NCBI RefSeq assembly: GCF_036365525.1
Contig: NC_090387.1
Span: 89,259,691 to 89,323,690 of the forward strand
Length of the DNA: 64,000 nt
From: Heterodontus francisci
Lineage: Eukaryota
Direction: 5' to 3'
The stretch's first letter is position 1, and each line of letters begins with the position of its first letter. The translations under genes were made by a program, and so were the position numbers. Below, one piece after another: positions 30,607-40,010 of this stretch. The notes below the pieces were generated by a model that made no database searches, was not told the origin of the DNA, and saw only the letters and a program-made list of their open reading frames with translations.

Positions 30607-30774
30607 TTACATGGCATTTTGTTGCTTGTAAAGAACGTCTGCTCTTGGTTTTTCCATCCGAACCTGAGCGTACTCCGTGCTGGTATCCTTACAATTAGCC
30701 TTTGCTGTTCCCTTTAAACCTGCCATATCTAGAGCTGCGTAGGTCAGTTTATTACCCGGTGACCTGTGGTTGGT
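30607..30774 (-). CDS. Exon 6: terminal cytoplasmic exon with ITIM (LTYAAL) and ITSM (TEYAQV)
   Basis: Acceptor tgctttcacag, phase 0, lying within ORF 30607..30810. Motifs at 30730-30747 and 30661-30678. TAA at 30607-30609. Confidence 0.85.
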   Translation of the reverse strand, partial: TNHRSPGNKLTYAALDMAGLKGTAKANCKDTSTEYAQVRMEKPRADVLYKQQNAM

Positions 30775-33700
30775 CTGTGAAAGCAATTTTGGGAATATCA
30801 TTAGTTGCATGTTTTAGCTGACTGTAGTCCACCGTTCCATAAATATTGGAATAGACAGTGCCTCGCACAATTAGCGTTACAAGCAATAGGTTGCTATTGC
30901 AGCATTTAAGACATTTCCAATACTAAACTGCATAATTTGCTAATTGAAATTATTCAATTTCTTTGCCCGAAAACCAGAGTCAAATCATTAAAGGAAGGAT
31001 TGAGATATCAGTCACTGAGGCCCACAACATCACTGTCTGCGCACTATCTCGGCGCCATCAGCGCTCAGCAGGCCGAATCAGTCTTATTAACAAAAATATT
31101 CAAGACAGTTTGAGAGAAGGCAAGGTTAAGTTTCAGTCTTTACAGCCTGAAATTTACTCATCGTCAGCGTTGAGCGGGATTGAAAAATTCGACCCATTTT
31201 CCAAACAGTGAAGCGAATGCAATGATAATTTCCTAGGGTGGAGCAATCGTACTTTTCAGATATTGTGCTCCGTGCAATCATTGCTTAACGCCCAAGCGTG
31301 AAAGACTGAAAAAAATCCCCAAATTCCATAGAGTCACAACAGGCCTCCTGATTTCACTTCGTTTGGTCACCACCAGAAATCCTGCAGAAACCCTTTAATA
31401 GGCTGCAAATGCTCCATAAGTTGGTTCTGTGGGAGTTCCACTAATATGCTAGCGAATTAATGGAAAATCCATGACATTTGTAGGTCAAGAGAATAAATGA
31501 AATGAGAGATCAAAATTCGTCCCTGTTGCCCATTGATAAAAAAAAATCTGTTTCAAATAATATGCATCTGGCAATGTTTATATACTTGAAGTTACACTTC
31601 AGAATACACAAGATACATGTATTTCAACAGGGAAGAAAAATTCCAAGGGAGGATTCGCCATTCGTGGTTAACTAAACCAGTTAAAGATAGTATCAAACTT
31701 AAAGAAAAAGCACATAATTGCGCAGAGATTGGTGGCAGGTCAAAGACTGCACAGAATATTTTGAAAAAATGACTAAAATATTGACAAGGAAGGTAAAATT
31801 AGAATACGAGAGAAAGTTATTTAGAAATGCAAAGACAGATATTAAGAGTTTCTATAGATTTTTTTTAAAGAGAAAAGTCAACAAAGTGAACTTTGGTCCT
31901 ACAGAAAGTCAGTCTGGGGAATTATTAATGGATGATAAGGAGATGGCAGATGGATTGAACAGTTATATTGCTTCGATCTTCACTATTGAGGATACAAGTA
32001 ACATTCCAGAATTAGCTGTAAGTCAGGAAATGAAAGGGATGAAAGAACTCAAGAAAATTGCAATCACCAGGGGAGTAGTAGTGAACAATTTTTTGGAGCT
32101 GCGGGCTGAGATGTCCCCGGGTCCTAATGGACTTCACCCTGGGTTCTTAAAGAAAGTGGCTAGTGAGATAGTTGATGCGTTAGTTTTAATTTTCCAAAAT
32201 TCCCTAGATTCGAGAAGGTTCCATTAGTCTGGAAAATAGCCAATGTGACTCCTTCATTCAGAAGGGGAGGGAGATAGAAAGCAGGAAACTACAGGCCAGT
32301 TAGCTTAAAATCTGTCTTAGGGGAAATGTTAGAAGCTATTATTGAAGACGTTATAGCAGGTTACTTAGAAAAATTGAAGATAATCAGGCAGAGTCAGCAT
32401 GGTTTTGTGAAAGGGAAATCATGTTTAACCAATTTATTGGAGTTCTTTGAGGGAGTTGCATGTGCTGTGGATGAAGGGAACCGGTGGATTTATTGTACTT
32501 AGATTTCCAGAAGGCACTTGATAATGTTCCACATCAAAGGTTATTGCAAAAAAAAAAACTCATGGTGTAGGGGTAACATATTGGCATGGATAGAAGATTA
32601 GCTAGCTAACAGGAAGCAGAGAGTAAGCATAAATGGGGTCATTTCCTGGTTGCCAAGATGTAACGAGTGGTGTGCCACACGGATCTGTGCTGGGGCCTCA
32701 ACATTTTACAATATATTTTAATTAGTTAGATGAAGGCACCGAAGGTATAATTGCTAAATTTTCTGATGACACAAAGATCGGTAGGAAAGTAGGTTATGAA
32801 GAGTACATATGGAGGCTACAAATAGATGTAGATGGGTTAAGTGAGTGGGCAAAACAAAAACTGGCAGATGGATTATAATGTGGGAAAATGCAAAGTTGTC
32901 CATTTTGGCAGGAAGAATTATCTGAATGGTGAGAGATTACGGAGCTCTGAGATGCAGAGGGATCTGGGTGTCCTAGTGCATAAATCACAAAAGGTCTGTA
33001 TGCATGTACAGCATATAATTAGGAAAGCTATCAGTAATGCTTCAGCTATGCAAGGAATTGGTGGGACCACATCTGGAGCACTGTGCACAATATTGGTCTC
33101 CTTATTTAAGGAAGGATGTAAATGCATTGGAAGCAGTTCAGACAAGATTTACTAGACTGACGCCTGGAATGGACGGGCTATCCTATGAGGAAAGATTGGA
33201 CAGGCTAGGCTTGTATTCGCTGAAATTTAGAAGAGCAAGAGGCGACTTGCTTGAAACATATAAGACCCTGAGTGTTCTTGACAGGGTGGATGTGGAAAGG
33301 ATGTCTCCCCTTGTGGGAACATCTAACTAGGGGTCACTGTTTAAAAATAGGGGGTCGCCGATTTAAGAAAGAGATGAGGACATTTTTTTCCCCTCTCAGA
33401 GCGTGAGTCTTTGGAGCTCTCTTCCTCAGGAGTCGGTGGAAGCAGAATATGTTTCAGACAGAGGGAGATAGATTATTGATAAGCAAGGGAGTAAAATGTT
33501 ATCGGGGGTTGGTGGTAATGTGGAGTAACCAGATTAGCCATGAACTTATTCAATGTTGGAACAGGCTGGAGGGCTACTCCTGCACCTAATTCGAATGTTT
33601 GTACGTATATTCGTATGTTCTGTTGCAGCAAAAATATAGTAAAGGCATGCGAATTATTTTGTAAAGCTGAGTTTTTCCACATTGAGAATGTGTGTTTTAA

Positions 33701-39700: not shown

Positions 39701-40010
39701 GCAATGAAAGGAAACGTTTGTACCCGTGTTTCTGCTTGTGCTCTCAGGGAGCTGAGTCACTTTGACTGAAGTTTCGCCGAAGCCTATAGGAAAAGAAAAT
39801 CAAAACCGAATCAGTGAGGGGTAACACTGCAGGAGAAAAGAGCGCGATGATTCAGTCAGTCAATGTGTCCAAAAGGCAATAAACCATGCCGCATGAAAGC
39901 ACAATAAAACAACTACTCGGTCAATGAGAAAGCAAGGAATCGAAGGAACGGGTACCTGTGAGAATGCCAACTAGAACAGCGAGGCAATGAAATACTACAC
40001 TCGCCAACAT
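30607..40010 (-). CDS. Six-exon Ig-superfamily inhibitory receptor, 336 aa: leader-VJ-C1-TM-cytoplasmic ITIM/ITSM (SIRP-/NKp30-/antigen-receptor-like). join(40010..39956,39783..39463,38151..37840,35912..35802,35109..35066,30774..30607)
   Basis: Manual splicing. All five introns are GT..AG with phases 1,1,1,1,0. Exon lengths 55+321+312+111+44+168=1011 nt, open to TAA. Canonical V-set, C1-set, TM and tyrosine motifs occur in the expected order. Confidence 0.88.
31590..33620 (+). mobile_element. Older CR1 ORF2/3' end in intron 5 (antisense to the gene)
   Basis: MSPGPNGLHP..ASEIVDALVLIFQNSLD and GPHLEHCAQYWSPYLRKDV. Confidence 0.88.
33905..33942. repeat. (CTAT)n microsatellite
   Basis: ctatctatctatctatttatctatctatctatatat. 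Confidence 0.85.
34150..34450 (+). mobile_element. Old CR1 RT fragment
   Basis: gaatgggcagacaagttacagatggaattt..gaacagagggatccgggg. Confidence 0.65.
34455..34825 (-). mobile_element. Short non-autonomous (SINE-like) derivative of the family-B LINE: head joined directly to tail
   Basis: The tail motif ggcatcgctggc (about 34462) is directly adjacent to the head motifs caaccacatt, ttccttcc..ggcattagcaaacca and tttgaactc. Confidence 0.55.
35066..35109 (-). CDS. Exon 5: short cytoplasmic exon GVQNDGERCDYPEQK
   Basis: Acceptor taccttaccag and donor AAG|GTATGC. The 44-nt length converts phase 1 to phase 0, exactly as needed to join exon 6. Confidence 0.72.
35802..35912 (-). CDS. Exon 4: transmembrane segment DGELTRCLLISSAAWGGLVLLLLGLLIAKRCISKKNK
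   Basis: Acceptor ctcttgtag. About 22 uncharged hydrophobic residues followed by a basic stop-transfer stretch. Donor AAAG|GTAAGA, phase 1-1. Confidence 0.9.
36620..37826 (+). mobile_element. Highly decayed CR1 3' part in intron 3, ending about 14 bp from the C1 exon donor
   Basis: Remnants of SCLxNL, MHFG, EKQQDL and RRLKDYLIEVLKIMKG. Tail gtgctgtaagattct. Confidence 0.7.
37840..38151 (-). CDS. Exon 3: Ig C1-set domain
   Basis: Acceptor ttttcctag. C1 motifs [30 protein letters not shown] and YTCSVSHSTL. Donor ACAG|GTAAGA. Confidence 0.95.
38245..38284. repeat. G-rich/poly-G tract in intron 2
   Basis: ggaggtgggaggtgggggt followed by a long G run. Confidence 0.8.
38703..38972. mobile_element. 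Palindromic Penelope pLTR-derived mini-insertion with a 14-bp direct flanking repeat
   Basis: Inverted arms 38734-38817 and 38891-38974 (one mismatch seen). TTACTTGTTAATAA at 38689-38702 and 38973-38986. Internal 48-bp tandem duplication. Confidence 0.85.
39463..39783 (-). CDS. Exon 2: Ig V-set domain with germline-encoded J-like G strand
   Basis: Acceptor ttttcctatag. Translation VTQLP..VSFHC..YWWK..LQISNVSVEDAGIYYC..GNGTGSNLVVW. Donor TGGG|GTAAGT. Confidence 0.95.
39956..40010 (-). CDS. Exon 1: signal peptide MLASVVFHCLAVLVGILT(G)
   Basis: ATG at 40010, hydrophobic 18-mer, phase-1 donor ACAG|GTACCC, and a short 172-bp intron to the V exon. Confidence 0.8.

Follow-up and report, generated by a model that had tools for sequence, protein, structure and literature searches.

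The window, i.e. the whole 64-kb stretch of DNA analyzed, contains a real, intact and transcribed gene of the horn shark, Heterodontus francisci, and no second gene. The gene lies on the minus strand, from 40010 to 30607, and consists of six exons, separated by introns all bordered by GT-AG, which join in frame to encode 336 aa. Exon 1 (40010-39956, 55 nt) begins at the ATG and encodes most of the signal peptide in 18 codons plus one nucleotide, ending in phase 1 at the donor GTACCC; it is followed by a leader-V intron of 172 bp (39955-39784). Exon 2 (39783-39463, 321 nt, phase 1 to 1) contributes the end of this split leader and a complete V-set domain, including a J-like G strand, where the motif N-G-T-G-S-N-L-V-V occupies residues 116-124 (39493-39467). 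A C1-set domain, with a YTCSVSH motif, is encoded by exon 3 (38151-37840, 312 nt, phase 1 to 1); exon 4 (35912-35802, 111 nt, phase 1 to 1) encodes a short stalk with Cys236, a transmembrane helix and a basic stop-transfer sequence, the transmembrane segment (residues 237-259, 35892-35824) featuring no charged residue. The last two exons are cytoplasmic: exon 5 (35109-35066, 44 nt, phase 1 to 0) is the one by which the frame, left in phase 1 by each of exons 1 to 4, returns to phase 0, while exon 6 (30774-30607, stop codon included), whose ORF is entered through a single in-frame phase-0 acceptor, encodes a tail with an ITIM, L-T-Y-A-A-L (Y293, 30747-30730), and an ITSM, T-E-Y-A-Q-V (Y316, 30678-30661). 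The surrounding DNA is rich in transposons, and LINE fragments are found within intron 5.

All exon translations are 100% identical, and in the same order, to the 336-aa RefSeq protein XP_067905932.1 (P0191), where exon 1 corresponds to residues 1-18, exon 2 to residues 20-125 and exon 5 to residues 268-281. The gene is not hidden, being already present in RefSeq (XP_067905932.1, XP_067905933.1) under automatic names. A preliminary description, made from the letters of the sequence, had reported six exons in frame to 336 aa, a split leader with a 172-bp leader-V intron, and an apparent cartilaginous fish as source; the gene structure, as read directly from the canonical splice sites and from the RefSeq identity, agrees with it on each point.

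Splicing of exons 2 to 5, for which a check against spliced RNA had been proposed, is also observed directly. A 604-nt contig from run X1 joins E2-E3, E3-E4 and E4-E5 at exactly the predicted bases, with zero mismatches, and a contig from run X2 joins E2-E3; the joints around exon 4 are located at 35912/37840 and 35802/35109, and the portion of exon 2 lying under the contigs is 39463-39710. The record of these runs only guesses that they are RNA: their RNA origin is concluded from the fact that the contigs are spliced. The contigs span E2-E5, and the E1-E2 and E5-E6 junctions are based on splice-site logic and on the RefSeq model. The transcript is present in two of four runs, all from one sample. 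A second isoform (also labelled X2), for which RefSeq is the sole source, skips exon 5, with a consequent frameshift and loss of both ITIM and ITSM; its last seven residues are read from the frame 30752-30886, and the C-terminus of P0163 is DQPQVTG. The same frame, which immediately precedes exon 6, was considered as an alternative ITIM tail (TVYSNI, VDYSQL): it is unlike any family tail, is not preceded by a good acceptor, and was attributed to chance.

Six open exons with canonical splice sites, the presence of all conserved Ig residues (as evaluated in a 55-member alignment), a spliced contig free of mismatches and two canonical tyrosine motifs, of which the ITSM is more canonical than that of the paralogues, make it highly improbable that the gene is a decaying or non-functional family copy, with transcripts representing noise. 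Features which would suit such a copy are the transposon-rich setting, with LINE fragments in intron 5, the frameshifted RefSeq isoform, the detection of the transcript in only two of the four runs of one sample, and the lack of an extra tail exon found in several paralogues; no relic of this exon was detected in intron 5 by tblastn.

The types of domain are directly assigned by Pfam: the translation of exon 2 scores 43.8 bits as V-set (cut-off 26, E 3.4e-11) and that of exon 3 scores 48.8 bits as C1-set (cut-off 21, E 9.3e-13), the C1-set score being 60.7 bits on the full protein. A single C1 exon, and a single C1 domain, follows the V domain. The AF2 model has a mean pLDDT of 81.6, with both Ig domains above 90, and features a helix at residues 229-265. 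Residues 124-226 of the model superpose on membrane-proximal domains of MHC class II at 1.4-1.8 Å, and the C1 domain also fits the C1 domains of IgNAR and CH3. One V-set and one C1-set domain, as stated in the preliminary description, are thus supported by scores above the Pfam cut-offs and, for C1, also by fold.

The J-like motif aligns with the light-chain J motif FGxGTxLxV in HMM alignments with lambda, kappa and SIRPα. Its canonical Phe is replaced by the Asn of an N-G-T sequon, which is likely to be glycosylated; G117 and G119 are nearly invariant across the 55-member alignment. The V and J-like parts are continuous in one exon, unlike separate V and J segments, and within 300 bp of this exon no RSS, searched as heptamer plus nonamer at 12- or 23-bp spacing, is found on either strand, in keeping with the non-rearranging VJ described earlier. 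A lone CACTGTC after a Cys codon, similar to a heptamer in 6 of 7 positions, is not accompanied by a nonamer and is at chance level.

The top Foldseek match of the model is a TCR beta chain, followed by Fab light chains, at E about 1e-15, all two-Ig chains being tied in such searches, so that SIRP is not separable by fold from Ig, TCR or B7. The ectodomain fits B7-H6, and PD-L1, PD-L2 and butyrophilin ectodomains are aligned together with it at Z 13.6-14.8; some relatives of the gene, moreover, are named NCR3LG1-like or CD276 homologue. Data of this kind would suit a protein acting not as a receptor but as a ligand on the cell surface, similar in type to B7-H6, B7 or butyrophilin. Such an identity is, however, very unlikely, since dozens of two-Ig chains unrelated to these share the same Z values, and the family features an ITIM plus ITSM tail, along with activating-type counterparts carrying a basic residue in the membrane. 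B7-type ligands are not known to have either a conserved tail of this kind or such counterparts.

Conservation of the tail motifs is directly seen in 29 retrieved proteins, reaching as far as a chimaera (Callorhinchus), which share the module [LV]-T-Y-A-A-[LV], fixed spacer, T-E-Y-A-x-[VIL]. In the window gene both the ITIM (LTYAAL) and the ITSM (TEYAQV) are canonical, with Y293 and Y316 placed 23 residues apart, and the inhibitory tail noticed in the preliminary description is confirmed at the sequence level. Some relatives (P0002, P0029/P0193, P0131, P0172 and others) carry R or K within their transmembrane segment, together with a short tail; a basic transmembrane residue is the usual mark of activating receptors. 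The window gene itself, as judged by its predicted tail, is of the inhibitory type. Its V domain would bind a ligand, Src-family kinases would phosphorylate Y293 and Y316, and SHP-1 or SHP-2 may be recruited, through their tandem SH2 domains, to the two phosphotyrosines, at their distance of 23 residues, with the effect that activation signals would be damped. Skipping of exon 5 would then generate a tailless form, presumably unable to signal.

Membership of the gene in a family is a direct outcome of the searches: 125 matches are found at E<=1e-10 among 1.84 billion representatives, and about 100 of the 125 are proteins of 600 aa or less with both V and C1. All members which can be named come from chondrichthyans (shark, ray, skate or chimaera). 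The V exon matches family members at E from 8.8e-43 to 1e-10, the nearest paralogue being 79% identical, and every one of the 33 candidates found by a search with the C1 region is a family member. A search with the tail alone (P0191 residues 267-336) gave no candidate past its word filter, a result which, owing to that filter, does not bear on the tails of SIRPs. In the tree, whose rows do not include tetrapod or teleost SIRP sequences, the gene falls within a 14-row elasmobranch clade (SH-aLRT 99), where, of the seven paralogues of the horn shark, it branches first, basal to the six others. V-C1 is the common form; one skate member is V-C1-C1, with two near-identical copies of C1. Automatic names are inconsistent, including SHPS-1/SIRP-like, SIRPβ1-like, Ig light chain-like, tapasin-related-like and others.

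Taken at the level of predicted proteins, this is a large multigene family of non-rearranging, SIRP-like, paired receptors (inhibitory and activating-type), present across cartilaginous fish. A literature search for SIRP in cartilaginous fish returned nothing relevant, and no paper describing the V-C1 family was found. The exact 336-aa protein is in RefSeq, and the gene belongs to a large family and is not a singular relic.

The relatives of the family outside cartilaginous fish were evaluated by comparing a family profile with PDB (177,635 sequences). SIRPα is found at rank 3 and SIRPγ at rank 10, with E-values of 8.8e-33 for 2wng (SIRPα) and 3.5e-28 for 4i2x. Scores are 66.4 bits for SIRPα d1-d2 and 50.5 bits for d3, 72.6 for the lambda V-C unit and 68.5 for kappa: as far as sequence profiles tell, the fit of the family to human SIRPα is comparable with that to Ig light chains and to shark UrIg2. 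When the single sequence is used, SIRPα is at rank 15 in PDB, and the pairwise score with human SIRPα is 51 bits; the best match is UrIg2, with 32.7 bits for the C1 exon and 69.8 bits for the whole protein. A protein-language-model search, useful as a lead only, places SHPS-1-like and SIRPα clusters at ranks 1 and 4. SIRP, NKp30 and PRARP had all been suggested as relatives: among them SIRP is the one supported, by the family profile and by RefSeq names, while NKp30 and PRARP do not fit, as detailed below.

A closer relationship with SIRP may be considered, where the family would be the cartilaginous-fish set of orthologues or co-orthologues of SIRPα and SIRPβ, and the gene a CD47-type sensor of 'self' on phagocytes. 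The ranks of SIRPα and SIRPγ among PDB sequences are in its favor, along with the score of SIRPα d3 with the family C1, as the constant domains of the other four top chains do not exceed 36.7 bits; inhibitory and activating-type forms are paired in the family, the canonical Phe is missing from the J-like motif, as in SIRPα, and RefSeq and Atlas names point to SIRP. Still, one C1 domain is present instead of two, and Ig light chains score equally: orthology appears unlikely, with an appreciable chance of being correct.

The same light-chain scores, lambda and kappa being the best V-C units for the family profile, enter a different explanation, by which the family would be a surviving non-rearranging sister of IgL/TCR-type chains, closer to them than to SIRP, and would thereby be left over from the pool of VJ-C1 genes into which the RAG transposon inserted. 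Split leader, VJ, single C1 and TM, every one of them in phase 1, reproduce the exon plan of a TCR or IgL chain exactly; the Foldseek matches are headed by TCR beta and Fab light chains, and UrIg2, a published candidate (PMC12227049), is the best single-sequence match in PDB. Only a few bits, however, separate these scores from SIRPα, in a ranking biased by the antibody chains of PDB, which number in the thousands; at the position of the canonical J Phe stands an Asn that is likely to be glycosylated, and an ITIM tail with a paired-receptor pattern is typical of innate receptor families. On balance, such a sister relationship seems improbable.

The best explanation for the data as a whole, which we hold with considerable confidence, is that this locus of the horn shark contains a gene, intact and transcribed, whose product is a type I membrane glycoprotein with a germline-joined V-J, one C1 domain, an uncharged transmembrane segment and an ITIM plus ITSM tail, a member of a large chondrichthyan family of paired V-C1 receptors, which, among described molecules, is most similar to SIRP. 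The window gene alone is not a discovery, as it is already predicted by RefSeq; what it adds to the family is an inhibitory member with good support, and a case in which the tail is predicted to be lost through exon skipping. At the least, the family documents, at the level of predicted sequences, that the oldest jawed vertebrates possess a large receptor system in which inhibitory and activating types are paired; from here one may ask whether self-recognition of the SIRP type is older than bony vertebrates.

A non-rearranging gene, in which V and J are already joined in one exon and a C1 domain is present, has long been sought by immunologists, as antibodies and TCRs are believed to have arisen when the RAG transposon split a gene of this type. 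The chondrichthyan V-C1 paired receptors, including the window gene, might represent an ancestral state of SIRP, V-C1 at first and V-C1-C1 later; in addition, few living molecules of the non-rearranging kind might be closer to the membrane-anchored TCR/IgL-type chain with its single C1. This proposal is speculative, and we give it a rather small chance. If it is true, UrIg and UrIg2 would be joined, as models of the gene split by RAG, by further candidates in which the leader / VJ / C1 / TM plan is exact.

In comparison with TCR and IgL, the gene shares exon and domain logic (leader / V-J / C1 / TM for TCR) and the architecture and fold of a V plus C1 chain. It differs from them in having no V-J split, no RSS and no charged membrane residues for CD3-type partners, in its predicted inhibitory tail, and in the substitution of the J Phe by the Asn of the N-G-T sequon.

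In the elasmobranch genes UrIg and UrIg2 the leader is split, V and J are joined in the germline within one exon, and domains of C1 type are present. UrIg is a secreted protein with three C domains, the number in UrIg2 being nine to eleven; neither SIRP nor ITIM is mentioned in the paper describing them (PMC12227049). The window gene resembles them in its cartilaginous-fish origin, split leader, germline-joined VJ exon and C1-type domain, and differs in the ITIM/ITSM tail, in belonging to a many-copy paired-receptor family, and in its single C1 domain, a simpler and more TCR-chain-like plan than the three to eleven constant domains of UrIg and UrIg2.

NKp30 (NCR3) and PRARP, cited as antigen-receptor relatives, have a non-rearranging V with a J-like motif (PMC10751288), which is their likeness to the window gene. 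No specific similarity to either was found in any of the sequence or fold searches run on the gene. Both have V-only ectodomains, and for this reason do not fit its architecture; NKp30 has a basic membrane residue, while the window gene has a C1 domain and an uncharged transmembrane segment. The tail, as a motif pattern only, resembles that of PD-1 type, with one ITIM followed, about 23 residues on, by one ITSM; the ectodomain of PD-1, unlike that of the window gene, consists of a V domain alone, C1 being absent.

SIRPα, finally, is built with two C1 domains, and its tail contains four tyrosines, where the window gene has one C1, one ITIM and one ITSM, and identity between them is low, no better than with Ig light chains. 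Features shared with SIRP are a non-rearranging V with its J-like strand in one exon and no canonical J Phe, a C1-set domain, a type I membrane protein with paired ITIM-type tyrosines, where LTYAALDM presumably resembles a SIRPα ITIM, and a family including activating-type relatives with a basic membrane residue and a short tail.

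The six-exon gene of the preliminary description is present on the minus strand as claimed there: the boundaries of E1 (40010-39956), E2 (39783-39463, V with a J-like strand), E3 (38151-37840, C1), E4 (35912-35802, TM) and E6 (30774-30607, tail with ITIM/ITSM) were read directly from the sequence, all acceptors and donors are canonical, and the leader-V intron is indeed 172 bp long. The 44-nt cytoplasmic exon, E5 (35109-35066), was one among several candidates of that length in a mechanical exon scan, and was singled out by the RNA data. E1, E2, E3 and E4 end in phase 1, as is usual for Ig-superfamily domain exons, and phase 0 for E6 is restored by the 44 nt of E5.

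Transcription was evaluated by searching the V-to-C1 stretch, about 0.33 of which is E2 plus E3, in four sequencing runs. All four come from one sample, and the gene is present in only two of them: the share of sampled words was 0.31 in run X1 and 0.23 in run X2. Contigs were placed on 34120-40119. A 604-nt contig of run X1 covers, with 0 mismatches, 39597-39463, 38151-37840, 35912-35801 and 43 letters ending at 35108; its joints (39463/38151, 37840/35912 and, after a +1 shift, 35802/35109) are all GT..AG on the gene strand. The V-C1 joint is seen again in a 278-nt contig of run X2. Being spliced, these contigs can only be of RNA origin, which the records of the runs do not state. Of the five junctions proposed for checking, E2-E3, E3-E4 and E4-E5 are thus joined by RNA contigs, whose coverage extends from E2 to E5; E1 and E6 lie outside it.

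Intron 2 holds a repeat with an inverted-repeat core (38520-39119; core hairpin 38780-38879). In all four runs it is covered by RNA contigs, to summed depths of 50,000-350,000, and many of these contigs end or jump inside it. The hairpin core matches mir-5928 on both strands, at 39 and 34 bits, below the gathering score of 59. Probably the repeat is an abundant element of MITE or SINE type with transcripts from many loci, and does not belong to the gene as such. Just ahead of the acceptor of the C1 exon is a long, C-rich, homopolymer-like tract, poly-C on the gene strand (38239-38295), and reads seem cut there. Many LINE-type reverse-transcriptase/endonuclease ORFs, some long (up to 401 aa), are spread over the 64 kb, on the plus strand at 16731-18229, 28344-29978, 31718-33330, 48994-52815 and 60121-63897, and on the minus strand at 22579-25733; one fragment falls within intron 5, on the strand opposite to the gene. 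Beyond the receptor gene, the window seems to contain only transposon debris.

The exon translations, each compared separately, are all found, 100% identical and in order, in a Heterodontus francisci RefSeq protein, XP_067905932.1 (P0191; 336 aa), named "immunoglobulin kappa light chain-like" and marked isoform X1. Isoform X2, XP_067905933.1 (P0163; 273 aa), is named [quoted passage not shown]; here E4 is spliced straight to the E6 acceptor, and the resulting frameshift leads to the C-terminus DQPQVTG, with loss of both tyrosine motifs. The gene being already in RefSeq, annotation has not missed it; only its meaning is unsettled.

Exons were searched one by one, while whole-protein analyses were run on P0191. 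The ectodomain agrees with the V-set plus C1-set layout first proposed: Pfam assigns both domains over curated cut-offs, with C2-set under its own. AlphaFold2, given an alignment of 55 family members, models the protein with a mean pLDDT of 81.6; both Ig domains are mostly above 90, a TM helix spans 229-265 and the tail is disordered. Foldseek matches this model best to a TCR beta chain and to Fab light chains. By a search independent of Foldseek, the C1 part superposes at 1.4-2.2 A on MHC class II membrane-proximal domains, IgNAR C domains and CH3, and Z values of 13-15 are shared by many two-Ig ectodomains, B7-H6 among them. Comparisons of the predicted fold confirm the V+C1 plan and do not discriminate families. 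The J-like strand, N-G-T-G-S-N-L-V-V, is aligned by HMMs with FGxGTxLxV of lambda/kappa J and SGAGTELSV of SIRPα; its Gly-x-Gly is nearly invariant across the family. The Asn of an N-G-T sequon replaces the canonical J Phe, which the SIRPα motif likewise lacks. We infer that the V domain does not pair as antibody V domains do. No RSS was found within 300 bp of the V-J exon on either strand, in line with the description of the gene as non-rearranging. At the outer membrane boundary (TRC-LLIS) residue 236 of P0191 is a Cys (about 35893-35895), replaced by Y, H or S in most paralogues; it could make a disulfide-linked dimer possible.

The tail, predicted to be inhibitory as first described, contains a canonical ITIM, LTYAAL (Y293), and a canonical ITSM, TEYAQV (Y316), their tyrosines 23 residues apart. 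This module recurs with equal spacing in 29 fetched proteins, four of them from the chimaera Callorhinchus, and is therefore older than the chimaera-elasmobranch split. Several paralogues carry, ahead of it, an extra 41-residue exon with degenerate motifs, absent from this gene and from the family member P0161; no relic of it was found in intron 5. In other members the tail is short and the transmembrane segment contains Arg or Lys, features that usually mark activating partners coupled to adaptors. An open frame at 30752-30886 (minus strand), with TVYSNI and VDYSQL, overlaps the E6 acceptor in another phase; it was rejected, showing no similarity to any family tail, and its last seven codons are those read by isoform X2. 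The start of the 3' UTR, right after the stop (30568-30606, minus strand), aligns in another frame with the coding C-terminus of a paralogue isoform, P0153 (…CGTRCICVHI), so the position of the tail-exon stop varies among paralogues. The C-terminal 30 residues of a catshark relative (P0001, isoform X3) match transposon-like sequence at 9848-10039 and 23909-24001, which suggests that this isoform ends in an exonised repeat.

When searched against 1.84 billion representatives, the V exon gave 125 matches at E<=1e-10. About 100 of the fetched matches at or below 600 aa share the V + C1 plan; a few others have this tail and a V domain only. The 40-odd nameable members, from cluster look-ups and a word-based search, all come from sharks, rays, skates or Callorhinchus. 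Their automatic names (SHPS-1-like, SIRPβ1-like, Ig lambda-like or kappa-like, tapasin-related-like, NCR3LG1-like, CD276 homologue, MHC class II beta-like, TCR beta-like) are inconsistent, which shows that none of the proteins described so far is a clear orthologue. Longer models, where checked, mostly repeat the V-C1 unit in tandem and look like gene predictions run together, which leaves V-C1-TM as the basic plan; exceptions are a skate V-C1-C1 member, its two C1 copies nearly identical, and a V-V-C1 catshark model. A maximum-likelihood tree built from 58 V-C1 regions puts the gene inside a 14-row elasmobranch clade (SH-aLRT 99), where it branches off before the six further paralogues of the horn shark (support 83). 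Sequences from catshark, bamboo shark, ray and skate are co-orthologous to the horn-shark group as a whole, so the gene has no one-to-one orthologue, and the horn-shark copies derive from lineage-specific duplication. This copy is ordinary and intact, one inhibitory member among many; what is of interest is the large family around it, annotated yet apparently undescribed.

The present candidates for the RAG-invaded gene are set out in the UrIg2 paper of 2025, with no mention of SIRP or ITIM receptors (PMC12227049); a shark MHC paper of 2023 cites NKp30, PRARP and UrIg as VJ genes (PMC10751288). The literature search, whose scope leaves out many subscription papers, yielded nothing on SIRP-like genes in cartilaginous fish. 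A family profile, run against all PDB sequences, scored 72.6 bits with the lambda and 68.5 with the kappa light-chain V-C unit, 66.4 with SIRPα d1-d2 and 58.4 with UrIg2 V-C1; SIRPα ranks 3 and SIRPγ 10, amid thousands of antibody chains. The family C1 reaches 50.5 bits with SIRPα d3; none of the constant domains in the other four top chains exceeds 36.7. With the single protein as query, UrIg2 leads in PDB at 69.8 bits and SIRPα comes fifteenth at 51.3. In a protein-language-model search, a lead only, an SHPS-1-like cluster ranks 1 and the SIRPα cluster 4. A defining feature of SIRPs, the presence of two C1 domains, is missing from the basic plan of the family, and any orthology to SIRP is tentative. 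The original interpretation is supported. We conclude that the family has a detectable relationship to SIRPs, which it resembles in architecture, in signalling logic and in its paired-receptor organisation; by sequence, its distance from Ig light chains and from UrIg2 is about the same.
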